This document shows, one piece after another, positions 1 to 17,433 of a stretch of DNA of 64,000 bases. A program made the translations under genes and the position numbers. Location: NCBI GenBank assembly GCA_965112735.1, contig OZ218955.1, positions 682,001 to 746,000 on the forward strand. Reading direction: 5' to 3'. Within the stretch, counting starts at the first letter, position 1; each line of letters begins with the position of its first letter. Source of the stretch: Phaeosaccion multiseriatum. Taxonomy: Eukaryota > Protista > Ochrophyta, other classes. The notes beneath the pieces are model-generated. The model did not search any database, was not told the DNA's origin, and worked only from the letters and a program-made list of their open reading frames with translations.

Positions 1-3000
1 CTTCTCGCGTTCGGCCAAAGACCTTCTTAAATGCGATGCTGGAGCACACTTCGGCAACGTGAAACAGGAGCAGCGCCACTGGCAAGAGCAGAGTCTGCGT
101 GTCGAAGCGGCTCCAGATGGCGATTTGCGGCCGGTCCAGGCCTACGTCTCCGCTGGCGTAGAAGTCGGTGATGGGCTGCTGGAAGAGATGAAGGAACTCG
201 TAGGGAACGATGGCGCAGCAAAACAGCCTGGCGACATGCACTGCCACAACAAGCATGCTCAGCAGGGTACGCATTCCCAACCTCCTTCCTCCCCTCGCCC
301 GCCACCCCTGCTCCTCCTCGTCTGCACCTGCTCCATGGTGCTCGCTCTTCTTCACCTTCTCGCGCCCCTTTCCTCGGTTGTACGTTGTGGCGGGCGAGAC
401 CCGGGCAGGCAGGCCTGTCATTATGGCCCCCTCGGGTACCTCGGCTCCCTCAGGCACGCAGGAGCAGGAGGTGATGAGCGCACGACGTCCCAGGGAGGCG
501 CCCGCCCCAATGATGGTCTTGTCGCCAAGCGTGGCGCCTTCACCGACGGAGCAGCCCAGCAGTACGCCAGTGCCACTACAGGGCATTGGGCAGTGATTGC
601 AGATTGCCAGTAGAGGGGGAAGAGGAAGGAGGAGAGAGAATCGGAAGGAAGAAGCTTGTTGGACGAGGCGGCCGGTCGGAAGATAAACGACAGACATAGA
701 CACTACTGAGCCATCGCATGCACTGGCCTTAGTCAGCTCCCCCACCCCCCAGACTTACCTGCTCTCTGTGTGGAGCGTCAGGCCGCTCCCTAAGAAGGCG
801 TTTGCCCCAATGTCCAGCGTGTCAGGGTCACTGAGCACCACTGCACCGCCGATGGACGCACTCCAGCTGATGGACGCGCCAAGGAGCTTGTACCACAAGA
901 CCATCAGCTCCGTGCCGGAGAAGAAGCTCATCATGAGCAGGTGCGAGAGTCCTGTCAGCCGATTGGCAGTCTCCCGACGGGCGAGCGCACAGGTAGACAT
1001 GTCATTCATTTGCCGACCCTTGCTCAGTTTGCCGACGAGCACCCACTTCAAGACCACGCCCACGATCACGGCAGTAGTGCTGATGATTGCCAACCAGAGG
1101 AAGAGCAGGAGGATACCAGTGTAGCGCCCAGCGCTGACCTTGTTGGAAGCCTCTAGCTGGAATGCGATTGCCGCCAGGAAGCCTGGCAGGAGCGTGATGG
1201 CTAAGCACGTGCCAAGCAACATGAGCTGCATCCAGCCCTTGGATGCCAGCGCTGGTCCTCTGATAGGGGGCTGTTGAGGCGGTATGCGAATCGCCGCTGG
1301 ATTGCCCTCGTAGAGTCGCGCTCCCGCGAGCCGCGTGCCAGAGGGCACCGTCGCTTTCACTCCAATGGTGACATTGTCCTCAAGCCTCGCTCCTCCGTGG
1401 ACAGAGCTCACTGCTCCCAAGTCGCAGCCAGATCCGATCACCACCTGCATGCCGGACATGGAGGGGATATGGAGTGCAGATGGGGGTATCGTCACTATTG
1501 GCTCTGCAGACAACGATGGGAAGTGTGTGCATCCAAAGGTAGGCGCCACATACCGACACCGCCTGCTGCTGGCAGTAGCTACTTGGGCTCCCGCTCGCTC
1601 ACCTTGTCGTAGCTGATCCTCATGTCCCCAATCAGTGTCTTGGGGGAGATCATGACACTATCGCTCACAAGGCAGTTGTCGCCAATGTGTACCAAGTCAA
1701 ACTCGCTCAGGCGCACCTGCAAACAACAACGAGGATCAAGCAGCAGGGAAAGAGGACGACAAGCAAAGAGTGCTTTAGCTGCCGCCCGCTTCGTCTGCTT
1801 TGCTTCTTGCCACCTCCTCGCCCCGCACCGCACGAATAGCCCGGTAGACTACGGGCAGGTGGTTCCGTGGTTCCTTCTTACGGGTCACGTACCCCTGTCA
1901 GATCGCATCCGTCGCCGATGTGAGCTCCCATCATGCGGTACAGAGGCACGAGTACGACGGAGTCCGAGAGGGCAATCCCGACCAGCGGGTGGAAGAAGTA
2001 GTCCAGATACGTCTCCACAACCCAGCTGAGACGCGAGCGGAAGGTGAGGGGGGAGAGTGAGAGTGGGGGCACTGTCAAGCTGATACAAGCTTTGCGAACT
2101 TCTACCTCCACCACAAGGACTCGTTCGATGGACTCTTGCGATCCTTCCCTTATCCAGCGCTTTCCTCTTCCCCCCCAATCCTCCAGTCCAGCCAGGTCTT
2201 ACCAGCGCAAATGGTACGTGCTGTAGACCTTGTACACGCCCGCTTGGTACGTCCCCACGATGCTCCACTTCACCAGGGGGGCAGCCAAGAGGGCCAAAGC
2301 TGCCGTGACCACCAAACCGACCAGGTTACCGAGGAGGATCGCAAGGTAGTCGCTCGTGACGAGAGCGTCCCGACGGGTGCCCGTGCTGGCTAGGCCTTCC
2401 TGGAGCTCTAGAAGCTTCAAGACCTGCAGAGCACCTATGCGGCAGTGTTACTCAGTCAATCGAATCAGGATCGGCTGAGGATTGCAATTCTCACTACTTT
2501 ACCGTACCTGGAACAAGTTGATGAGAGGGAAGCCCGACACTGCGGTCCCCACGCTCAGCGAAACCTTCCCAAGTAAGACGATGACGACGAACATGATGGC
2601 CAGCCACGCCAAGCCCTGCGCTGCGGCCACAGTCGCCAGCCTGAAGGCCGTGTAGCCCAACTCGGCCTTGCGATGGGCAGGCATGTGCGCATCGGAGGCG
2701 TGCTGCCACTCCCGATCAGCGTTGCTGACAGAACTAGCCGCCCCGCTCGGCGAAGGCTTCTCCTGTGCGTCTACTCGAGCCGTGCCCTCCCCGAGCGTCA
2801 CACAGGCCTCGCTGATGAAGCTCGAGAGCGCATTCAATGTCGGCATATCGAAAACTGCGGCAGGAGTGATGATAGATCGAAGGCTCTCGTCCCTGCCCTC
2901 TCCGCCCGCTCGCTCGTCGCCTTCGTCTCCTTCAATAGCGTCGACCACTCGCGTCACCACCTCTGTAACCGCGACGGAATCGTATGCCACCGCCTCCAGC

Positions 3001-6000
3001 ACGTTCGGGTCCGGATCAGTGGCAAGCTTACCCCCCGTGGCACCGGAGACGCTCTCTACGGCGCTCATGACGATGTGCCTCACGGATGCCTCTCGCTCCA
3101 ATGGCGAAACTGCCAGCAGCTCACCCATCCTCCCCGGTGCACCGAGCGGCTCGGTAGAAGCACCCGCAGCCCTAGCAGCCAGAGCTCGGGGAAGCGGGAA
3201 AGAGCGGGGCGTCTGGTATCCTGTCCATGCCCTTCGCTGTGGCTTGGCAGCAACTATGGCGAAGTGCTGTGCCAATGCGTCAGTTGCGGGCACCTGCCCC
3301 TGCAGAATGCAATGCGCGTTGAATCCACCCAACCCAAAGGAGTTGACACCGGCGACCAAGCCCTCTTTGTCACTGCAGCATGCTGCCAAGTCAGTCATCT
3401 GCGTCGGGAGCACTACGGGCAGCCCTTCGAGCTTCAGCATTGGATTGACCTCCTCGAGGTGCAGGTTGGGAGGCGCTGCCCCATGCTCCAGCACCAAGAT
3501 GGCCTTGATGAGCTGCGCCATTCCCGAGGCACCCTCCATGTGGCCCAGCGTCGTCTTGACAGTGCCCACCACAAGGGGAGACTGGGGGGGTCGAAGGCCT
3601 GCATACACGGCCTTCAGAGCACCTGTATAGCACAGGAGAGGGCAGGAGAGGGGTGGAGAGGAGAGGAGAGGAGAGAAGAAGTGGGACGAGCAGAGGAGAA
3701 GACAGGAGAGGAGAGGAGAGAAGAGCAGAGAAGAAGAGGAGAGAAGAGAGGAGGGGAGGAGACGAGAGCGGAGGAGAGGGGAACATCACTTTACGATAGT
3801 ACAGCCCGTAGGGCCATAGCTCCGAGCTCCATGACAACGAGCAAAAGGACCGAGCCGAAGAGGGGCTGACGTACCCATCTCGATGGCGTCACCCGTGACG
3901 GTGGCCGTGGCGTGCGCCTCTACGTAGGACACGTCGCTGCCCCTGTAGCCGGCGCGGGAGAGAGCCACAGTAGCCACACTCTTCTGCGCCACTCCTTTGG
4001 GGGCGGAGAGGGAGCTACTGACCCCACTGTGGCTTACCGCCGTCGCCTTGATAGTGGCGAGGATACGGTCGCCATTGAGCTTCGCATCCGCTGAACGTTT
4101 GAGCACCAGCGCTCCACAACCCTCGGCTCGAACGTAACCGTCCGCAGTGGCGTCCAGAGATTTGCAGCGTCTGACGGGAGATCAGAACAAACGATCCATG
4201 GTTGCAAGCGCAGTGAGGTTAAGTAGCCCAGGCTTGGAAAAATGGACAAGCGCAGTCAATGGAAGGCTGTGGCAAAGTCAAACTCACCCTAGTTTGGAGA
4301 GGAGTCCTGCCTTGTCGAGTGCTCCGAAAGTCTGGCGATGCAGCAGAAGATTGACACCCCCCACCACCGCGCCGCTGCATTTGCCCAGCACAAGATTGTT
4401 GCAAGCCGTGTCAAGTGCCACAAGAGCAGAGGGGCATCCCGTGTCGATGGTCTGGCAATTGCCCGTGAGGCCCAGCGTGTGCGATATGCGGCCCGCCACG
4501 CACGCTGCGCTCCCCCCGACGAGGGAGTATGCGCTTTGCTTTGCGCCGCTCTCCTGCTGAAGCACGTTCCACTCTGCTCCGGACTTGCCGATGAACACCC
4601 CGATATCCAGGCCGTGCAGACTCTCTAGCCCCTTGTCGAATCCCGCCCTGTACAGGGCCTCGTACGCAGTCTCCAGCATGATACGCTGGCTGGGGTCGAG
4701 CGCTTCCGCCTCCGCTGGAGAGATGCTGAAGAAGGCGTTGTCGAACTTGTCGACACCATCGATAAAGCCACCTTTGCACAAGAGAGGGCGTCAGAGGTGA
4801 GAGGGGGAGGGAGGGCGAGGGAGAGGGAGAGGGAAAGAGAGAGAAAGGGACATCAGAGGAGGGAGGGGGAGGGGGGGAGGGAGAGGGAGAGGGAGAGAGA
4901 GAGAGAGAGGGAGCGGGAAAGGGAAAGGGAGAGGGAGAGGGAGAGGGGGAGGGGGAGGGGGAGGGAGAGGGGGAGGGGGAGGGGGAGGGGGGGGGAGAGG
5001 GAGAGGGAACGGGAAAGGGAAAGGGAAAGGGAAAGGGAAGGAGGGAGGGAGAGGGAGAGGGAGAGGGAGAGGGGGAGGGAGAGGGAGAGGGCGAGGGCGA
5101 GGGAGAGGGAGAGAGAGAGGGAGAGGGAGAGGGAGAAATGGAAATCACCCACCCGACTGTGTTTGTTTGCAATGCAATCAACCAACTCAACCGATTCATG
5201 TACAAGCCCCTCACCTTGGATTCCGGCCCCCAGGCCTCGCTCGGGCGGAGCTTCGGAGACGCAGTCCTGCTCGGAACACAGCTTGACCCAGAGCTCCTCC
5301 GGGCTGTTGCAGCCCCCCGGGAAGCGGCACGACATCCCGATGACCGCAATGTCCCCGTCACCAGCCGCTTCAGCTTCAACTTGCAGAGGAACGGAAATCG
5401 AGTCAGTCCCACTCGCGCTTCTCTCGTCCCCGTACAGCGCTTCGTGGAGATGCGCTGCCAGCAAGGCGGGTGTGGGGAAGTCGAAGAACGCTGTAGCCTC
5501 AATGTCCAAGGCCCTTCCGTCCGCCGCGCTGCTGTACAAAAGGTCCTCCAGTGTCTGCGCCAGCCCAGCCAGTCCCTCCGACGTGATGCCTGCGTCCATG
5601 AAGCGGTCAGTGGCCCGCAGGCCGGGGTTGCCGGATGCCTCTCTGGCAGAGTCGACCACTCGCTCGAGGATGAACGCCACGCGAGCAGCCTTGACCACTC
5701 CTTCAATGCCTTCTTTCATCACCGGCATGCCATCCGCTGCATGCTCCGTGCTGCTACTGCTTCTGTCCACCGTTTTCGCTTGCATCAGCGCCGGTATGTT
5801 ACGAAGTGGCCCATTCGAAGGGTTGGTGCTGTCCACCGCCCCGTCTCCCCCACTCGCCACTGTCTCGGCCGTGAGTTCGTATACCGTATGCAGCTCGTCC
5901 GCGTGAAGTGCCTGCCTTGTCGCCCGCCTTCGGATCTTGCCGCTCGTGGTCTTGGGGATGGTCTTCTGCTTGATGGCCATTACTCTAGCCGCCTTGAGGC

Positions 6001-8785
6001 CAAATGAGGACGAAAGCATGGCTTGAGCGGCCTCCACCACTGCCCGGGTCTCGCTCTCTCGCTCCTGACGGATCTCGAACACCACCTCCAGCACGCCGTC
6101 CCCTCCCGTCTCGTCGGAGGAGAAGGCCGCCACACAGCCCTGCCGAATGGCATCAGAGGCCTCTTGAACGGCGAACTCGATGTCCTGCGGGTAGTGGTTG
6201 ACCCCATTGAAGATGATGAGGTCCTTGATGCGGCCGCAGATATACAGCAAACCCTCCTCCACAAAGCCCACGTCGCCTGTCCGTAGGTACTGGCGAGGAG
6301 GCAAGCTGTCACTGCCCCCGGCCCCACCCTGGAGAGAGAGCTTCGCCTGGAACACCTCCTTCGACAGCTCGGGCTTGCCCCAGTACCCGGCGGCGACAGA
6401 GGGAGAGGAGACCCAGACCTCTCCCGTGGCTCCTGCTTCGCCGACCTCGCCCATGGTGTCGGGATTGACGATTCGAATGTCCACAAATTCTGCTCTCTCG
6501 CTCGGGGAGCCGACGCTGGTGAGGTCGGGGCGAGAAAGCGATCGATCGAGGACAGAGGTCCAGGAGACTGGGGAAAGTGTGCAATGGGGTGGGGAAGGCG
6601 AGAGAACGAGTGAATTAGTCTTTGGACCGATTCCTACTCTGAGAGAGAATGAAATGTACCACCGCCTGTCCCTTCGCCTCGACCCGGCCCCCCTTCTGTG
6701 CAGACTTCTTACCTAAAACCACGTGCTCAGCGAGCCCGTACGCAGCCGAGAACCACCTTACAGTGCACAAGTCACAGAGAGCGAGGCACGTACAAGGGAG
6801 AGGTATGAGGTTAGAAACCACTCACCGGGCTGAAAAAAGGGGGGAGCACGGAGGATGTCGTGACAGGTCTCTCGAGCTCAAGCGCAGTCATAGCTCCTGC
6901 CGCACACTCACTCACCCCTGCCGGAGGCCGAAAGGCAGGAAGGCCCCTTCGAACCTCTCCACCGTCTCCGCTCGGATTGGCTCGGCTCCCGACTGCAGCA
7001 CGACCACGCAGGACAGATCCAGCTTGGGCTCCTTGCGAGTGCCGCGCACCTTGGCCATGTACCGGGCGCAGAGGGCATAGGCGAAGTCGGGGGCGACGGA
7101 CCACTCCACTCGGTGTCGAGAGATGAGCTCCAGCCAGAGCAGGGGCCGCCTGATGAAGCTCACGGGGGACATGTAGTGCATAGTCATGCCCGTCAGGAAG
7201 GGGGTGAGGAGGCCGAGTACGAGACCCATGTCCTGTGGGAGGGGCACCAAGCCAGCACAGACAGGTCCACCAGAGAAGGGGAGGGGGTAGGACGGGGCAG
7301 AGATTGGAGAGCGATTGAGCAACAAAGGCAAGCCTAGAAGCAAAACAAAGCAGCACCGAGGGGTGTCACAGCCACAGCGTCGCACACACTCGGCGCCTCG
7401 CTCCTGGTCGTCCGTTTCCTATGTTTCTCCCCTCCCGCGGTTTGTTGTCTATAGCCACCCTTGCCCCTCCCTCGCCCCCTCTTTACTACTCACATGATAC
7501 TGGGGCAACCACGAGAAGCCAATCGCGGGCAGGTTATGGATCCGCCTGCCGCTAGGTGCAACTTCCGTGGTGGGACCGCTGTAGCTCGCCTCAGACTGGT
7601 GTGAGGAGGAGTCTCCAGCCTTCTTGTCCGAGGGCCACAGGCGGACCATGCCCGTAGCGGGGTGGCAGCCGATGAGATATACGTTGGCCATGAGCGCTCC
7701 GAAGGTTACCATGACGCCCTTGGGGTCACCGGTGGAGCCGCTGGTGTACTGCAGGAAGGCCAGGTCCTCTTCCGTCACGCCCGGCTCGTCAAAGCTCCTC
7801 GCCGACGAGGAGGAGGTGGAGGAAGAGAAGAAGCTCTGGAGCAATCCTCCATCGGTGGCCTTAAAGTCGAGGGCCTCAGGCCACAGCTTGCTGGAGTCAG
7901 AGAGTGGATTGGCCCTGTCCACTTTGCGCAGAGCTGCAATCTTGGAGTCGGTGAGGCACAGCAGGGGCTTACAGTCCGCCACGATCTTGCTCATCTTGGG
8001 CAGTGACTTGGACAGGGGAGGAGCAGGCGGGTACACCATCACCGCCACCACGCCCGCTCTGAAGCAGCCCAGGAAGGCGGCCAAGAAGTGCAGGCCCGGC
8101 CCGTAGCACAGCACCACCATGCTGCCCTTGGGCACGCCCCACTCCTCGCGCAGCGTGTAGGCAATCTTGCCCGCCTGAGGAAGGGTTGGGAGAAGAACGT
8201 TCGCATCTTGGGCTGATTATCACAAAGAGTCTAGGAGTGCCGGGGGGGGGTAAGGTGCAAGACTACAGCACACCAGCAGCAGCTGAATCGGCATGAGAGA
8301 GCAAGCAACAAGGGTATCAACACCTCCACGGAATGTTTGGTCGTTGCGTTGCTTACCTCATCCCACATGCGTCTGAAGCTGTACCTCTCCGCCTCTTTGC
8401 CCTTGCCATCGTACCAAAAGGCAAAGGGCTTGTCGCCGAGCTTAGCAACAGCCTCGTGAGCCCTCCTCAGTAGAGGAGCGAGAGAAGAAGAGGCCGCGAC
8501 TCCTTCGTCGATTCCGCCTCGTTGTTCCTCCTTTTCGTCGCCTGCTGGAGAGTCTCGCTCCCACAAGACTTGTTGCGTCACCCCCCCCGTTGGAACTTTA
8601 TGACGACCTTCCTCACCCTTGGAACCTTCATTTCCATTGGCGTGGCGGGGGAGGAGGAGGGGCTTCGTCTTCCGGCCATCCCCTCTGCCTGCTGCTGCAC
8701 GGCCTGTGGCGGCTGCCGCTGCTGCTGTCTCTCCGGGCGGCACCCCTCCTAGGGCATCGCCCCCTCCTCGTCCACCATGATCCAT
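1..8785 (-). CDS. Hybrid membrane megasynthase: fatty acyl-AMP ligase (FAAL)-ACP-ketosynthase-ACP-Pls-like transmembrane/beta-helix ('NRPS terminal') region; 3' end lies beyond the window
   Basis: Phase-consistent exons: 8785-8357, 8174-7494, 7232-6916, 6756-6713, 6567-5215, 4771-4288, 4170-3875, 3622-2508, 2423-2203, 2025-1893, 1716-1603, 1444-759, 575-1 (6,448 nt, no internal stop). FAAL motifs: [69 protein letters not shown]1 GITS (Ser 5579-5581) with FDFPT. KS: [57 protein letters not shown]2 YDS (Ser 2976-2978) with FDMPT. Then TM pairs followed by [52 protein letters not shown], hexapeptide-like repeats ending YEGNPA/MTGLPA, and a third TM pair ending FKKVFG. Confidence 0.9.
4798..5136. 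repeat. (GAGAGG/GAGGGG)n purine microsatellite in intron 5 of the megasynthase
   Basis: Directly visible. It forms a long polypyrimidine tract on the coding (minus) strand. Confidence 0.95.
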
Positions 8786-8906
8786 TTCCTCACTTTTTGT
8801 TCCCTTCAGCACCACTAGAAGCAAGAAGTTGTTTACTTTTAAGTTGGGTGAGAAGAGGAAGAAAGGGAAAAAAAACCGTTAAAGAAGAAATGTGTGTGTG
8901 GGGGGG

Positions 8907-10132: not shown

Positions 10133-13100
10133 CTACCAATATGGCCTTGATGAGTTGAGCCATCCCTGACGCCCCTTCCATGTGGCCTAGAGTAGTCTTG
10201 ACAGTGCCCACTACAAGGGGGGGGGCATCAGGCCTGTTGGGGTGAACGCTGCCTTGAGAGCGCCAAAGGAGTATCACGCGACGTGCGTGCGTGCGTGCGT
10301 GCGTGCGTGAGGGAGGGAGGGTGGGAGGGAGGGAGGGAGGGAGGGAGGGAGGGAGGGAGGGAGGGAGGGAGGGAGGGAGGGAGGGAGGGAGGGAGGGAGG
10401 GAGGGAGGGAGGGAGGGAGGGAGGGAGGGAGGGAGGGAGGGAGGGAGGGAGGGAGGGAGGGAGGGAGGGAGGGAGGGAGGGAGGGAGGGAGGGAGGGAGG
10501 GAGGGAGGGAGGGAGGGAGGGAGGGAGGGAGGGAGGGAGGGAGGGAGGGAGGGAGGGAGGAAGGGAGGGAGGGAGGGAGGGAGGGAGGGAGGGAGGGAGG
10601 GAGAAAGGGAGGGAGGGAGGGAGGGAGGGAGGGAGGGAGGGAGGGAGGGAGGGAGGGAGGGAGGGACGAGGGGAGGGCACGAATACGCTTTGTTTATTAT
10701 GTCTCATCACAGCATCATTGTTCTAGTTGGGACGTAAGAGAGACATCACAAGGATGGTCCAACACGAATGCCCCTCTTTTAACCTCTTTGCCTCCTTCAA
10801 CGTACCCAGCTCGATGGTGTCGCCCATGACCGTTCCCGTGGCGTGAGCCTCAACATAGCCCACTTCTCTCCCCTCGCACGCTGCCTGCCGCAGGGCTCTC
10901 CTCGCCAATCTCTCTTGGGCAGCTCCCTTGGGGGCGGACAGAGAAGTGCTGACGCCATTGTGGCTGACAGCCGCTGCCTTGATGACGGCAAGGATGTTGT
11001 CTCCGTCCTTGATGGCGTCCGGCAGGGACTTCAGCACGACGGCCCCGCTGCCCTCACTGCGCACGAAGCCGTCCCCGGCGGCGGCAAAGGATTTGCAGTA
11101 CCTGGAGAAGGAGACGGGACAGGAAGTAGAGTGGGGGGCGGGGTGGATCAGTGTCCAAGCAAGGGACCAGAGAGAAGAGAAAGGGCGCTTTGAAAAGAAG
11201 AAAATAGATGCAGCAAGAGCTGCAGGAGTACACTCACCCTTCCTTCGACAGAAGCCCCGCACTGGCCAGGCCGCCAAAGCCTTGGTCGTGAAGCAGCAGG
11301 TTGACCCCGCCAACGACGGCAGAGCTGCACTGCCTCAATTTCAGACTGTTGCACGCGTTGCTGAGGGCCACCAGGGCCGACGAACATGCTGCGTCTACGC
11401 TTTCGCATGGACCTGCGAGGCCGAGTGTGCGAAATGCGGCCAGCGAAACATGCTTTGCTTGTCCCTGCCAACGTGTAGGCGCTGAGAGAAACGGCATCCG
11501 CGCTCTCACGCAGCAGAGCGGGCCAGTCACTCCCTGCAGCGCCCACAAACACGCCGACTCGGTGACCTTCAAGCCTGTGTCGGCCCTCGTAGCCGGCTCT
11601 GTGCAGACCTCCTCGTACGCCACTTCAAGCATGATGCGCTGGTTGGGATCTTGGATCTCCGCCTCGGCGGTGGACATGCCGAAGAATGCGTTGTCGAACG
11701 CTTCAACACTGTCGATGAAGCCAGCCACCTGCTCGCATGACGAGGAGAGGAGGAGCGTCCAAAATGGGGTGAGTGGGGCACAGAGACGGGCAAAGAAGCG
11801 CCCAGCAAAGCTGTTCATGCCCTTGAAGACTAACATTGGCAAGCCTCGTGATCACAGGGTAGAAACGCACCTCTCACTCCTGTTCCCAAGCCTCGCTCAA
11901 GGGGTGCATCGGTGACGCAGTCCTCCTCATTGCACAGCTTCGCCCAGAGCTCTTCCGGGCTGTTGCAGCCACCGGGGAAGCGACACGCCATCCCAATGAC
12001 TGCAATATCGCCGCTGGCCTGCTACCGTCAGAAAAAGGGACCCCAGGAATGGAGCGAGGCAGTCCGTCAACGGAAGCGTCGTCCTCCTCTTCTTCTCCAA
12101 ACAGGACCGTCTCCAGGTGAGCTGCGAGTAGAGCTGGTGTCGGATAGTCAAAGAGGGCGTCGGCCCCAATCTCAGAATCCTTGTCGCTCCCGTCTTCAGT
12201 CTTCTCGCTGCCCAGAAAGTCCTCGAGCATCACCGCCAGCTCGGCCATCATCACCGAGGTCATGCCCGCCTTCATGAAGCGGTCGTCGGCGGTCAAATCT
12301 CCGTTGTGCGTCACCTCTACGGCAAACTCGAGGAGCTTATGATGGCCACCCTTGCCTCCCTACCGAGGCCCTCCATAGCACGCATGGCCAGACCGCCTTC
12401 TCCTCCTCCTCTCCCCTCCGGGACGCCGCCTTCGACTAAGCAAGCCCTTTCCTCTGGAGCTGAGCACATGCTGGCAAGCTTCACAGGAGGAGAGTCCTAT
12501 CGGTGTGGTTGGGGGAGAAATGGGCATGACAAGTGGGGTGAGACTCGACGCAAAGCCCTCAGCAGACGATTCCCTCACCACAACTGCACGGATGAAAAGG
12601 GCTGTGAAGGGCAAGTACCAAAGCACACAGATTGAAGGGGGCAAAGGATTGGAGAGATGGGCAAGAGGCCTCCACTCCCGCTCACTCGCACCTGTGACAT
12701 CGCAGTGCGGTCCTCGATGAGCTCGTGCACCATGTGCAGCTCGCCAGCGTGAAGCGCCTGTCTCGTCGCCCGCCTTCGGATCTTGCCTCTCGTGGTCTTG
12801 GGGATGGTCTTCTGCTTGATGGCCACCACCTTCGCCGCTCTGAGACCCAAGGAGGACGACAAGGCGGCTTGAGCAGCCTCCACCACTGCCTGGGCCTCGC
12901 CCTCTCGCTCTTGGCGGATCTCGAACACCACCTCCAGCACGCCGTCCCCTCCCGTCTCGTCGGAGGAGAAGGCCGCCACACAGCCCTGCCGAATGGCATC
13001 AGAGGCCTCTTGAACGGCGAACTCGATGTCCTGCGGGTAGTGGTTGACCCCATTGAAGATGATGAGGTCCTTGATTCGGCCGCAGATGTACAGCAAACCC

Positions 13101-15354
13101 TCCTCCACAAAGCCCACGTCGCCTGTCCGTAGGTACTGGCGAGGAGGCAAGCTGTCACTGCCCCCGGCCCCACCCTGAAGAGAGAGCTTCGCCTGGAACA
13201 CCTCCTTCGACAGCTCGGGCTTGCCCCAGTACCCGGCGGCGACAGAGGGAGAGGAGACCCAGACCTCTCCCGTGGCTCCTGCTTCGCCGACCTCGCCCAT
13301 GGTGTCGGGATTGACGATTCGAATGTCCATAAAGTCTGCTCTCTCGCTCGGGGAGCCGACGCTGGTGAGGTCGGGGCGAGAAGGCGATCGATCGAGGACA
13401 GTGGTCCAGGAGACTGGGGAAAGTGTGCAATGGGGTGGGGAAGGCGAGAGAACGAGTGAATTAGTCTTTGGACCGATTCCTACTCTGAGAGAGAATGAAA
13501 TGCACCACCGCCTGTCCCTTCGCCTCGACCCGCCCCCCCTTCTGTGCAGACTTCTTACCTAAAACCACGTGCTCAGCGAGTCCATACGCAGCCGAGAACC
13601 ACCTTACAGTGCACAAGTCACGGAGAGCGAGGCACGTACAAGGGAGAGGTATGAGGTTAGAAACCACTCACCGGCCGAAAAAAGGGGGGAGCACGGAGGA
13701 TGTCGTGACAGGTCTCTCGAGCTCAAGCGCAGTCATAGCTCCTGCCGCACACTCACTCACCCCTGCCGGAGGCCGAAAGGCAGGAAGGCCCCTTCGAACC
13801 TCTCCACCGTCTCCGCTCGGATTGGCTCGGCTCCCGACTGCAGCCTGACCACGAAGGACAGATCCAGCTTGGGCTCCTTGCGAGTGCCGCGCACCTTGGC
13901 CATGTACCGGGCGCAGAGGGCATAGGCGAAGTCGGGGGCGACGGACCACTCCACGCGGTGCCGAGAGACAAGCTCCAGCCAGAGCAGGGGCCGCTTGATG
14001 AAGCTCACGGGGGACATGTAATGCATAGTCATGCCCGTCAGGGGTGAGGAGGCCGAGTACGAGGCCCATGTCCTGAGAAGCAAGGAGAAAGTAAGCAGGG
14101 TAGTGAGTGGGGCGAGAGTGAGCAACAGCAAAAGGCAAGACGAGGCGCAATGGAGAGTAGAGGGGTGTCCGGCCGCACATCGTTTCTCCCCTTCCTCACG
14201 CTTGCTTGGCGCTTCGTTCCTGGCCGTCCGTTTCCACATTTCTCCTCCCTTCATGTGTCCTGCCTCTACTTCCTCGCTCCCTCGCTCGCTCACCCTCCCC
14301 CTATATACAAGTCAACTCACATGATACTGGGGCAACCACGTGGTTGGCACATTATGGATCCGCTCACTTGGTGCTGCCCTCTGGGTACGACCGCTGCTGC
14401 TCGCCTCAGGCTGGTCTGATGGGGAGTCTCCAGCCTTGTGCGAGGGCCACAAGCGGTACATCCCCGTGGCGGGGTGGCAGCCGATGAGATACACATTGGC
14501 CATGAGCGCTCCGAAGGTTACCATGACGCCCTTGGGGTCACCGGTGGAACCGCTGGTGTACTGCAGAAACGCCAGGTCCTCTTTGGCCACGCTCAGCTCG
14601 TCAAAGCTCCTCGTCCCTGCGCCTGACGAGGAGGAGAAGAAGAAGAAGCTCGGAAGCAGCCCCCCATCCGTAGCCTTAAAGTCGAGGTCCGCAGGCCACA
14701 GCTTGCTGGAGTCAGAGAGTGGATTGGACATGTCCACTCTGCGCACAGCTGCTATCGTGGAGTCGGTGAGGCACAGCAGGGGCTTACAGTCTGCCACGAT
14801 CTTGCTCATCTTGGGCAGGGACTTGGACAGGGGAGGAGCAGGCGGGTACACCATCACCGCCACCACGCCCGCTCTGAGGCAGCCCAGGAAGGCTGCGAAG
14901 AAATGCAGGCCCGGCTCGTAGCACAGCACCACCATGCCCCCCTTGGGGGCACCTTCCACTCCTCGCGAAGCATGTAGGCAATCTTGCCCGCCTGAGCAGT
15001 TAGCAATACGAGGGAGCAACGAGGGAGAAATAGTGAGACGCCCTGTTTAAGCCCCTCGTTATCACGAAGACGGGTGGTGCAATAGGCATGTAGCGGCAAC
15101 AGCTGAGTCAGGCGACGGGTAGCAAGGAAGGCGCCATGAACGCTCGCGGCTGTGACGCGTCAATCTCGCCCATCCCTTCTTCAGCTCCTTACCTCATCCC
15201 ACATACGCTTGAAGCTGTACTGCTCCGTTTGCTTTCCCTTGCCGTCGTACCAAAAGGCGAAGAGCTTGTCGTCGAGCTCGGTAGCAACCTCCTGTGCCCT
15301 CCCCAGCAGTATGGCAGTGTGCGAGGCAGTTCGCTTCAATACGTTTTCCCCGGC
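10133..15354 (-). pseudogene. Decayed, truncated FAAL-ACP-KS paralog of the megasynthase
   Basis: Largely the same intron positions as the intact copy (e.g. exons 15354-15193, 14991-14321, 14072-13761, 13602-13559, 13413-12692). Frameshifts near 14947, 14040 (5-nt deletion), 12337, 12020, 11608, 11426 and 10250, plus a 9-nt deletion before WLPQYH. Homology stops after LIKAILV (~10133). ACP GMTS; KS DAACSS/EAHATGT/KTTLGH. Confidence 0.85.
10283..10665. repeat. (GTGC)n followed by ~350 bp of (GGGA)n microsatellite in an intron of the pseudogene
   Basis: Directly visible; source of the spurious REGG/SLPP ORFs. Confidence 0.95.
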
Positions 15355-15547
15355 CTAGGCAAAGGGAAGCAAGCGAACAAGCAGGGGGGGCAACAAATAA
15401 GGTCAACGAATCGATCAGCCTTGCGCCCAAACGTTTGGATATCCCTACAGCGTGTTGGCAGTGTTGAGTGAGGAAGCTCGGGGTATGCTGAAGCAAAGAT
15501 AGATCATGAGCAACAACCCATGCAGTTCATTCCCACCCTATTTGCAC

Positions 15548-15955
15548 CTGTGGGGGGGGCTGCAGAGCCACCTCTGCAGTCACAGATGGACTCGTATCGG
15601 CATTCTTCACTCCCACAGTATCGGCTGCGATGAGCTCGTGCACCTTGCTTATGTAGTTTGCCAGCATGCGGCGCCTGCCTCGTCGCTCCCCGGCGGATCT
15701 TGCCGCTCGTGGTCTTGGGGATGGTCTTCTGCCTGATGGCCACCATCTTGGCCGCCGTGAGGCCAAAGGAACACGACAGTGCGGCTTGCGCAGCCTCCAC
15801 CACTGCCTGGGCCTCGCTCTCTCGCTCCTGACGAATCTCGAACACTACCACGAGCACGCCATCTCTTCCCTTCTCTTCGGAGGAGAAGGCCGCCACACAG
15901 CCCTGCCGAATGGCGTCAGAGGCCTCTTGCACGGTGAACTGTACGTCCTGTGGAG
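15548..15955 (-). pseudogene. Third copy: FAAL C-terminal subdomain fragment
   Basis: [25 protein letters not shown]...[11 protein letters not shown] is homologous to both other copies. A 4-nt insertion near 15648 shifts the frame before VHELI. Confidence 0.8.
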
Positions 15956-17433
15956 AAGCCCTCGCTGCTTCCACGCCCGTTCTGCCGCAGAAGAGGGGGG
16001 GTGTTTGGGTGGGGGGGGTAATGACGCGCGGCTGAGTGATGGGGGGGGGGGGCGAAGGAATGGCCGGCCGTGCGGCTCTGGACACGGGCTGTGTATGGGA
16101 ATGCTATGCTTCTCTGCCTCCTCGCTCACCCCTTTCTGCAAAGTCGCTCCCATAGCAGATCCGCTCTCTCCTGCCGAGCCTGAGCATCAGCTTTGCCCGG
16201 CGCTCGTGTCTGCGCCGCTCCCGCATCCATAGCTGCGCCCGCCTGCGTTGAGTACTTGCCGGGCACTCCCCCTCCTCCTTGCTCCTCTTTCTCCTCGGCC
16301 CTACTTGCAGCATTCTCCAGCACGCCGGCCACCCTTTCCCCCGCCATTTCACTTTGTCTCGGTGTCCCTTCTTCCCCGGCAGCAGCTCGTCGGCATCGAC
16401 TTGGCTTTCCCTCTCCGCCCGGCTTCGCTCATTGCCCCCATAGACACCACCACGGAGGGCCTCGGCAGCTGTGCTAGTGCTTCTTCGAGAGGTTTGCTCC
16501 CCGTCTTGCTTGTCTCCCCCTTCCGCCCGAGAGAGCTCGCCCATCTTCCTCCTACTTGGCTCTCCTGCTCACTGGCAAGAGAGAGCTGGTGGCCGAGTGT
16601 GTTACGCTTATGGGCCACCTGCAGAACCACAGATCCAGACAAGGGAGGCGGGAGGCGGGACATGCGCACGAGAAGGTGCTAGACGTCATACTGAAGCACG
16701 ATTGAAATTAAACCTTCCTCTGCGTGTATCACTTGATGTTCTGTGGCTGGTGGTGCGAACCAATGAACAGAGACACCACGATCGGACGAGGGGTGGAAGA
16801 AACAGTCAGACGACACTTTGTGAGTGGCGTTGGGCAGCGGGGGGATGAGTAGGGGAGGGATTGCGAGGATACGGTGAAAGAAAGAGTTCTGCCCGTGCTG
16901 CCACTGTACTAAACCTGCTTCTTGCTGCTCCTTGCGGCGTACTGCTGCTGCTCCTGCTGCTGCTGCTGCTGCTACTACTAACTACTCCTGTTGCCTATGC
17001 CCCCCCCCCCCACACGACGGCTAGCTTGTGTGGACAAGGCGCTGTCCTCTCTCGCTGTCTCCTCTCGCGTATCAGCGCTGCTCGTGTCAGCCGCGTGTTG
17101 CCAAATTGAACCTCACACTGAATTGGCGGGAACACTACACACAATCACGCACTCATTCACTCCCTCTCGTATCCCAAGAGCTTGGGACGGGGGATGGAGA
17201 GGCACAGAGGTTTGACTTGGAGACCTCAGCTTCCGGAGGACTCTGAACTCAGGATTTGTCGCTCACGGAAAACGCGGTGGAGGGCACCCCCCCCCCCCCG
17301 GGGATTATCGACATGGTGAATTAACACCCCCGGGGATTTTGGATGGGTGAAATTGAGCTGCCCTTTGTTGCTGTTGTTGAAGTGTCCCCACAGCACACAC
17401 AATAAGGAGCGCATACAAGAAGCTCTTGTTCTG

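Follow-up and report, generated by a model that had tools for sequence, protein, structure and literature searches.

A membrane-anchored megasynthase gene of Phaeosaccion multiseriatum that joins a fatty acyl-AMP ligase and a ketosynthase to a Pls/PosA-type terminal domain

How is an activated acyl chain released from a polypeptide that begins as a fatty acid-loading polyketide synthase (PKS) and ends in a membrane domain of the kind that builds amino acid polymers? This question is raised by a gene at the left end of a 64,000 nucleotide (nt) stretch of the genome of the ochrophyte alga Phaeosaccion multiseriatum (assembly GCA_965112735.1, contig OZ218955.1, positions 682,001 to 746,000; this whole stretch is hereafter the window, and all coordinates are counted within it). 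To our knowledge, the terminal domain shared by the synthetases Pls and PosA is known only as the chain-forming part of bacterial and fungal synthetases of cationic poly-amino-acid antimicrobials. In this study, the gene was found to encode one membrane-anchored megasynthase, in which a fatty acyl-AMP ligase (FAAL), an acyl carrier protein domain (ACP1), a ketosynthase (KS), a probable second carrier (ACP2) and a terminal domain of the Pls/PosA type lie in a single reading frame. By analogy with characterised enzymes, it would release an acyl or beta-ketoacyl chain from its ACP by passing it, in an acceptor-dependent manner, to a free nucleophile at the membrane, a reading to which we assign a probability of roughly one half. 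On sequence comparison, the gene is a variant without acyltransferase (AT) in a branch of the Pls/PosA terminal-domain family that is spread across eukaryotes and as yet unstudied.

The reading frame of the megasynthase

The gene was rebuilt independently of an earlier model (termed here the sequence-only reading) by placing peptide anchors in each open piece and listing all stop-free GT/GC...AG joins. Within positions 1-8824, every long open piece with a protein-family match lies on the minus strand. The rebuilt gene begins with an ATG at 8785 and comprises 13 exons and 12 GT...AG introns of 84-443 nt; its frame contains no stop in 2168 codons and exits the window at base 1, the left edge, such that the gene is 3'-truncated. 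Start coordinate, frame and intron count thus reproduce the spliced, stop-free frame with 12 GT-AG introns that the sequence-only reading had proposed. Each intron contains one or more in-frame stops or is of a length not divisible by three, and the G+C content at third codon positions (GC3) is 0.74 in the exons overall (0.71-0.87 across exons 2-13, being of coding type in all exons except the first) and a flat 0.57 in the introns.

1-8785, minus strand: megasynthase gene model (12 GT..AG introns, open frame, exon versus intron GC3)
8785-8357, 8174-7494, 7232-6916, 6756-6713 and 6567-5215, minus strand: exons 1-5
4771-4288, 4170-3875, 3622-2508 and 2423-2203, minus strand: exons 6-9
2025-1893, 1716-1603, 1501-759 (or 1444-759) and 575-1, minus strand: exons 10-13
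8492-8785, minus strand: N-terminal 98 codons, Gly/Ala/Arg-rich (GC3 0.52; similarity to the neighbouring paralogue starts only at residue 99)

The fusion of the loading part to the membrane part is independent of splicing and physically certain, because two single exons span its junctions: the C-terminus of the FAAL, ACP1 and the N-terminus of the KS are encoded within the exon at 6567-5215, and the C-terminus of the KS, ACP2 and the first transmembrane helix (TM1) within that at 3622-2508. Bacterial contamination was ruled out by the spliceosomal introns and the host-like codon bias.

Three details of the model require comment. The start codon is uncertain, because the first 98 codons have a GC3 of 0.52 and are without counterpart in the partial paralogue located directly upstream; residues 1-98 possibly represent 5' untranslated region or a mis-called start, and the true N-terminus is accordingly uncertain. 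For intron 9, the acceptor at 2080 creates an 18-residue insertion absent from all relatives and was replaced by that at 2026, which lies behind a long pyrimidine tract and yields HLRC|WVVETY, with the insertion gone. In intron 11, acceptors at 1502 and 1445, 57 nt apart, both keep the frame. The former adds 19 residues that have no counterpart in relatives and form a low-confidence coil in the structure model, and homology favours 1445; the pair may also constitute an alternative splice. Separately, a long CT/GA-rich microsatellite occupies positions 4796-5147 in intron 5 and, where a frame is open, translates as (SL)n or (PS)n.

The loading part and the membrane part

The domains of the megasynthase, all on the minus strand, are as follows.

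5903-8482, minus strand: FAAL-type adenylation domain, residues ~102-712, split by introns 1-4 (PF00501, PF23024 and NCBIfam FAAL matches)
5441-5665, minus strand: ACP1, residues 792-866, with the phosphopantetheine Ser in DAGITSEG at 5573-5596 (PF00550, local carrier profile, HH comparison)
3300-5350, minus strand: KS, residues 897-1309, split by introns 5-7 (PF00109 and PF02801)
4422-4445, 3900-3920 and 3531-3551, minus strand: KS catalytic residues, i.e. Cys in DTGCPSAL, His in EAHATAT and His in TLGHMEG (columns aligned with five relatives)
2805-3086, minus strand: probable ACP2, residues 1381-1474, with Ser in AYDSVAV at 2967-2987 and an 18-residue acidic insert (language model, HH comparison)
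2289-2612, minus strand: first transmembrane (TM) pair, TM1 at 2556-2612 and TM2 at 2289-2345, with intron 8 between them (hydropathy peaks 2.48 and 2.42; aligned with the TM pair of relatives)
1289-2276, minus strand: Pls-type unit 1 (C1), with KWSIVG motif at 2253-2276, helical subdomain and left-handed beta-helix; introns 9-11 (profile, alignment, beta-helix modelled with high confidence)
1052-1222, minus strand: second TM pair, TM3 at 1166-1222 and TM4 at 1052-1108 (hydropathy; AlphaFold2 hairpin H85-120/H128-156, pLDDT about 90)
398-1054, minus strand: Pls-type unit 2 (C2), with KWVLVG motif at 1031-1054, two helices and beta-helix; intron 12 (TIGR02353, profile, alignment, model)
11-262, minus strand: third TM pair, TM5 at 206-262 and TM6 at 35-91, and the start of unit 3 (C3), FKKVFGR at 11-34 (hydropathy, alignment; KW..GR in relatives)

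Exons 1-5 encode an ANL adenylation domain, for which the top NCBIfam matches are fatty acyl-AMP ligases (PRK12476, 151 bits; PRK05850, 145 bits; FadD32, 132-136 bits). In the exon encoding its C-terminus, the FAAL models all score above the fatty acyl-CoA ligase models and the FAAL/DIP2-type subdomain PF23024 is present; in exon 3, a CoA-ligase model scores slightly above FAAL (90 versus 80 bits). ACP1 is marginal in Pfam (PF00550, 18.3 bits over the full length), reaches a probability of 94.5% in HH comparison and is clear against a carrier profile derived from relatives, in which the Ser of DAGITS falls in register. The KS retains Cys, His and His in the catalytic columns when aligned with five relatives, and is 52.9% identical to the KS of P0020, a metagenomic relative described below. 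The FAAL, the first ACP and the KS with its catalytic Cys/His/His, as named in the sequence-only reading, were thus all recovered by these matches. No AT follows the KS: approximately 70 residues, encoded within one exon, separate it from ACP2, and no AT match was found in the gene.

The second ACP of the sequence-only reading fared less well: it is favoured by the language-model and HH signals, by a serine in register and by its position, but it has no Pfam match and its support is moderate. The nearest language-model clusters are annotated as phosphopantetheine-binding or acyl carrier in 99 of 100 cases (score 0.92), and HH comparison gave a probability of 20% (E 1e-3) with the Ser of AYDS in register, where 20 shuffled controls reached at most 2.1%. 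Its location, approximately 65 residues before TM1, is that of the thiolation (T) domain in Pls. Judged by these sequence comparisons, ACP2 is probably a carrier domain and is the weakest of the domain claims. A single-sequence AlphaFold2 model of ACP2 had a pLDDT of 50 and was discarded.

Downstream of ACP2, hydropathy analysis revealed three pairs of strong hydrophobic helices, in agreement with the three TM pairs proposed previously, and both the rebuilt frame and the alignment contain the KWxxxG segments that had been reported after the first two pairs as well as the FKKVFG at the window edge. The TIGR02353 model, which represents the Pls/PosA family, matches the largest Pls-like exon (E 1.1e-12, 47.2 bits) and the last exon (E 5.8e-5, 21.6 bits). 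A local profile built from the C-terminal 760 residues of 20 canonical adenylation-thiolation (A-T)-Pls proteins matches the spliced region at 143 bits over two overlapping stretches, and the KW..G motifs after TM2 and TM4 fall in register; in an alignment with eight relatives the register is held through C1, TM3/4, C2 and TM5/6. Furthermore, exon 12 was modelled by AlphaFold2 from a 46-row alignment (pLDDT 86, pTM 0.76). In the model, a beta-helix is followed by a long helical hairpin and then by two helices, after which the next beta-helix begins. This arrangement agrees with the published AlphaFold description of PosA, in which six bent TM helices are accompanied by two helices before each of three five-turn left-handed beta-helices, the latter packed like trimeric sugar-nucleotide acyltransferases (PMC10522769). 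A Foldseek search of the AlphaFold database clusters matched residues 18-247 of the model to predicted 'peptide synthetase', 'AMP-binding' and 'carrier domain' proteins (TM-scores of 0.6-0.71). No Pls C-terminal domain was found in the PDB, where only about 55 beta-helix residues find matches, these being gamma-carbonic anhydrases and hexapeptide N- and O-acetyltransferases. Profile, alignment register and predicted fold all show the C-terminal region to be a homologue of the Pls/PosA terminal domain, which bears out the assignment to the Pls/TIGR02353 type; as far as predictions show, the fold is that of Pls.

Relatives of the terminal domain

An exhaustive HMMER search with exon 12 against 1.84 billion representatives, among which the gene's own product is absent, returned 203 proteins. 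The Pls part is without close relative in public data, because the best of these matches does not surpass 27% identity or an E value of 4.5e-14. Among the best 150 of the 203 matches, local searches with the gene's domains identified 29 proteins that combine a FAAL-type or KS-containing loading part with a Pls region; they correspond to 25 distinct rows of the tree described below, and a KS is present in four. These four (P0020, P0010, P0024 and P0065) are all the KS-bearing relatives found. Each has an AT in cis, and most also have a ketoreductase (KR), dehydratase (DH) or enoylreductase (ER); by sequence, the gene is the only AT-less form in this sample.

All named sources of the 29 proteins are eukaryotic. 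They include land plants (Marchantia MpACOS18, BBN01803.1; Cryptomeria XP_057823992.2; Adiantum KAI5057660.1), stramenopiles (Chrysophaeum KAJ8602067.1 and a FAAL-carrier-Pls transcript of Mucochytrium) and the choanoflagellate Salpingoeca kvevrii, also with a FAAL-carrier-Pls transcript. Regarding the KS-bearing relatives, P0020 encodes FAAL-ACP-KS-AT-KR-...-Pls in an uninterrupted 8.6 kb open reading frame (ORF) on a eukaryote-like, intron-poor metagenomic contig, P0010 (from the jakobid Stygiella incarcerata) and P0024 (Artemidia motanka) present FAAL-PKS-Pls in single transcripts, and P0065 comprises amine-oxidase fragments and FAAL-KS-AT-ACP-Pls. The single polypeptides of the P0020 ORF and the P0010 and P0024 transcripts constitute independent support for the fusion. 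When sought elsewhere, the architecture of the sequence-only reading was therefore found in its broad form, FAAL-(PKS)-Pls, in many eukaryotes, whereas the AT-less order FAAL-ACP-KS-ACP-Pls was encountered only here. A word-indexed search with the Pls region of P0020 returned only two proteins, this method being too insensitive for a Pls-type family.

The position of the gene was assessed in a quick maximum-likelihood tree of 130 terminal domains, with midpoint rooting, several long branches and crude labels. The tree splits in two, one part consisting of 63 rows that all lack a FAAL and the other holding all 25 FAAL/PKS-linked rows. Of these 25, 24 belong to a clade of 48 rows with an SH-aLRT of 90; most of the unlabelled rows in that clade are fragments truncated at the N-terminus. 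The terminal domain of the gene is located in a subclade with a support of 96, beside FAAL-Pls proteins without KS and apart from the 63 A-T-linked rows. Because the four KS-bearing relatives are spread over different sub-branches, KS modules were probably gained more than once.

In the literature searched, no paper was found that mentions TIGR02353, MpACOS18 or a Pls-type domain joined to a FAAL or PKS. The previous description of the fusion as uncharacterised therefore stands as regards the searchable literature, but not as regards its singularity, since FAAL-(PKS)-Pls proteins occur unnamed in many eukaryotes. A FAAL survey lists eukaryotic 'FAAL-NRPS' (non-ribosomal peptide synthetase) and 'FAAL-PKS' signatures without comment (PMC12820801), and plant HemY/amine oxidase-FAAL-catalase proteins were reported in eLife in 2021 as being of unknown function, with the Pls-type part unnoticed (PMC8460268). 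Pfam analysis of the Marchantia and Cryptomeria proteins, which are the same proteins as in the latter study, identified a carrier and a hexapeptide/Pls-type region. In the Cryptomeria protein (P0005), a catalase-like piece is inserted within the Pls-type region. Additionally, on another eukaryote-like metagenomic contig (L002:10001-17455), a gene for a 974-residue family 2 glycosyltransferase begins only 37 nt after the FAAL-carrier-Pls gene P0047, in the same orientation, an arrangement that hints that the acyl acceptor in that organism could be a sugar polymer or oligomer.

Proposed release at the membrane, its alternatives and known systems

In Pls, a donor bound to the carrier reacts with an acceptor, either monomer or chain, that diffuses freely, and at no point is the growing chain covalently held; a polymer arises since the monomer bears both an activated carboxyl group and a nucleophile (PMC9205021). 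Transferred to the megasynthase, this mechanism would have the FAAL adenylate a fatty acid and load it onto ACP1 rather than CoA, following which the chain would move to the KS cysteine. A single condensation with an extender on ACP2 would produce a beta-ketoacyl-ACP2, or, alternatively, the chain would merely be passed on; as the gene has no AT, the extender would have to be loaded onto ACP2 in trans. At the membrane, the Pls-type domain would then release the carrier-bound thioester by letting a nucleophile that diffuses freely (an amine or possibly a hydroxyl) attack it, leaving the acyl chain amide- or ester-linked to its acceptor in a reaction that is perhaps coupled to export. The architecture on which this scheme is built was observed directly, while each of its chemical steps we infer by analogy.

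Several observations weigh against acceptor-dependent release. As regards the loading part, the motifs around the KS catalytic residues are unusual, ACP2 lacks a Pfam match and is covered by the local carrier profile over its last helix only, and a search of the 9 kb upstream for a trans-AT, a KR or a phosphopantetheinyl transferase found only the partial paralogue. Extender supply for ACP2 is conjecture, because no AT, KR or other partner lies nearby. As regards the membrane part, C1 and C2 are complete, but C3 runs off the window after FKKVFGR, and the curated TIGR02353 cut-off of 423.1 bits is not reached by the single exons (47.2 and 21.6 bits). The complete terminal domains of the gene's clade likewise score 62-232 bits, versus 614 for canonical A-T-Pls (cut-off 423), and such low scores could mean that catalysis differs from that of Pls. 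We know of no catalytic residues established for Pls-type domains. Lastly, the four sequencing runs examined (X1-X4, from one sample) are of genomic DNA, their contigs crossing all introns (one, for instance, covers 1124-2674), and the decay of the neighbouring copy described below indicates a locus in flux.

The alternative that survives best is that of a lipid-polymer synthase, in which ACP2 would carry a donor with its own nucleophile (3-hydroxy-, omega-hydroxy- or amino-acyl) that is added repeatedly to a free chain, the resulting polyester or polyamide being exported. All characterised Pls/PosA members are iterative polymerases, and members of the clade are found in groups that have resistant wall polymers derived from lipids (algae, non-seed and seed plants). 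Moreover, the KS-AT-KR preceding the terminal domain of P0020 would supply a 3-hydroxyacyl thioester, i.e. a bifunctional monomer. Polymer formation requires a donor bearing its own nucleophile, which makes it plausible for the KR-containing P0020, but nothing indicates such a donor here: the gene has no KR, so that a beta-keto or plain acyl chain, which bears no nucleophile, is to be expected as its donor. Furthermore, the FAAL/PKS-linked domains cluster separately from the polymerases, with scores that fall far short of the family cut-off, and no clade member has a known product. We consider this alternative unlikely for the gene, and the product envisaged in the sequence-only reading, a polymer such as a surface polyester or acylated wall polymer, found no support.

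A broader version of the same idea concerns the whole clade. The PosA paper takes the entire family to be cationic homopoly-amino-acid synthetases, including eukaryotic members with unknown substrates. The FAAL/PKS-linked Pls-type clade could instead represent unrecognised eukaryotic membrane polymerases that link acyl units bearing hydroxy, keto or amino groups into a polyester or polyamide of lipid origin and export it, although we regard this as something of a long shot. If true, the clade, conserved from stramenopile algae to liverworts, ferns and conifers, would be a candidate for the missing assembly enzyme of algal and plant surface polymers (algaenan-, cutin- or sporopollenin-like).

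The gene might also be non-functional as modelled, being a rearranged or decaying member of a tandem array, a wrongly joined model, or the carrier of an inert KS-ACP2 module. The unit directly upstream invites this suspicion. On the same (minus) strand, at 10134-15953, lies a partial paralogue corresponding to residues 99-1245 (FAAL, ACP and most of the KS), whose FAAL part has 95.6% and 86.7% DNA identity to the gene. It carries a 5-nt deletion and a 2-nt insertion in conserved exons, has frame breaks in its KS N domain and stops within the KS, and ends after '...QLIKAILV'; it is most likely, from these sequence features, a decaying remnant and not part of the megasynthase gene. The possibility that it forms the 5' half of a bimodular gene was ruled out by the frame-breaking indels in conserved exons and the stops inside the KS. 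A truncated copy in the adjacent 10.1-16 kb, first 98 codons that look non-coding, altered KS motifs and a weak ACP2 are all compatible with a non-functional gene. Set against these are the 2168 open codons over 13 exons with canonical splice sites, coding-type GC3 in all but the first exon, the retention of catalytic residues, domain junctions located inside exons and an enrichment of synonymous changes between variants, and we judge a non-functional or wrongly modelled gene to be very unlikely.

The variants in question derive from the sequencing runs, which confirmed the assembly and yielded further contigs that form a second set, with 95-99% identity to the window. Across positions 1-6000, approximately half of the aligned run contigs are 95-99% identical, rather than 99% or more, and 39 variant positions recur. 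Exonic positions account for 28 of the 39; 12 of the exonic changes are synonymous, and the 16 that are non-synonymous fall mostly in linkers. This second set is consistent with a second near-identical copy or a divergent allele, and the pattern suggests mild constraint.

Other observations on the runs and on the upstream region are recorded here. An AG..AG joint at 4183-4305 in the runs matched no splice site and was not used. The assembled contigs break at the CT/GA microsatellites of intron 5 and of the equivalent KS intron of the paralogue, where such a tract of about 470 nt, (PPSL)n, lies at 10231-10700. One contig of run X3 ends at window position 2717 and continues into CCCTAA (telomere-like) repeats, which is probably a chimeric contig end and not a chromosome end within the gene. 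The KS motifs of the paralogue (DAACSSAL, EAHATGT) are more canonical than those of the intact gene. Between 12718-14075 of the paralogue and 5872-7235 of the gene, introns are 98.7% and exons 95.2% alike, the reverse of the expectation under purifying selection; gene conversion, with later relaxed or diversifying change in the exons of the pseudogene, may explain this. An additional isolated FAAL C-terminal subdomain is present upstream of the paralogue (15507-16103, minus strand), with 80% protein identity to residues 617-717.

Least probable of all is a head-to-head condensase resembling Pks13, in which the KS would join two long chains by Claisen condensation and the terminal domain would pass the resulting branched beta-keto chain on to a sugar or membrane acceptor: the order FAAL plus ACP-KS-ACP plus transferase parallels FadD32 and Pks13, the second-best NCBIfam match of the KS exons is the Pks13 model (130, 63 and 61 bits) and a second substrate other than malonate would make the missing malonyl-loading AT less of a difficulty, but Pks13 itself needs an AT for its carboxylated acyl chain and none is present here, the matches reflect generic type I KS similarity with another PKS model scoring best, and the KS-bearing relatives all have a standard AT.

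Acceptor-dependent release thus remains the preferred reading. A FAAL and KS feeding a Pls-type domain would represent a third route of PKS or fatty acid release, besides thioesterases and reductases, and one that takes place in the membrane. It would not be an oddity of one alga, as the separate, eukaryote-rich clade includes the genetically tractable Marchantia. The identity of the acceptor would name a new lipid or polymer family and explain the plant 'HemY-FAAL-catalase' proteins.

Comparison with known systems places the gene between several enzymes. FadD32 together with Pks13, the mycolic acid condensase of the Corynebacteriales, shares with it the loading of an acyl chain by a FAAL onto an N-terminal ACP, a single KS between two carriers and, by analogy, a last domain that would transfer the product to an acceptor without hydrolysis. 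The thioesterase of Pks13 transfers mycolate to trehalose. Conversely, Pks13 has an AT and this thioesterase-type transferase, is soluble or peripheral and receives its chain from a FAAL that is a separate protein, whereas the gene lacks an AT and its releasing domain is an integral-membrane beta-helix domain. LpxA, LpxD and the sugar-nucleotide N-acetyltransferases share the left-handed beta-helix fold. In LpxA and LpxD, a (3-hydroxy)acyl-ACP is the donor for O- or N-acylation, which speaks in favour of acceptor-dependent release here. These enzymes are soluble homotrimers of one short chain, in contrast to the three non-identical units and six TM helices of a single chain found here, and only about 55 residues of the gene's model superimpose on solved structures of this type.

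Closer to the gene are the eukaryotic FAAL-carrier-Pls proteins, in which a FAAL-type ligase and a carrier likewise feed a Pls-type membrane domain and the terminal domain belongs to the same clade. They differ in having no KS-ACP module and in an identity to the gene's Pls part of at most 27-29%, and the plant members differ further by an extra N-terminal flavin amine-oxidase domain and a catalase-like insert. P0020, P0010, P0024 and P0065 share a FAAL and KS-containing PKS module(s) ending in a Pls-type domain, and are set apart by their AT in cis and by terminal domains in other sub-branches of the clade. Finally, Pls of Streptomyces albulus and PosA of Acinetobacter baumannii have in common with the gene a carrier directly before TM pairs that alternate with helical and left-handed beta-helix units, the KW..G motif after TM pairs, the predicted fold of the repeat unit and the absence of a thioesterase, reductase or classical condensation domain. 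In place of their A-T didomain for a diamino acid, the gene has a FAAL-ACP-KS-ACP loading part; its terminal domain is approximately 25-29% identical to theirs, scores far under the family cut-off and groups with the other FAAL/PKS-linked domains in a clade of their own, and the donor expected here by analogy would be an acyl or beta-ketoacyl chain rather than a diamino acid.

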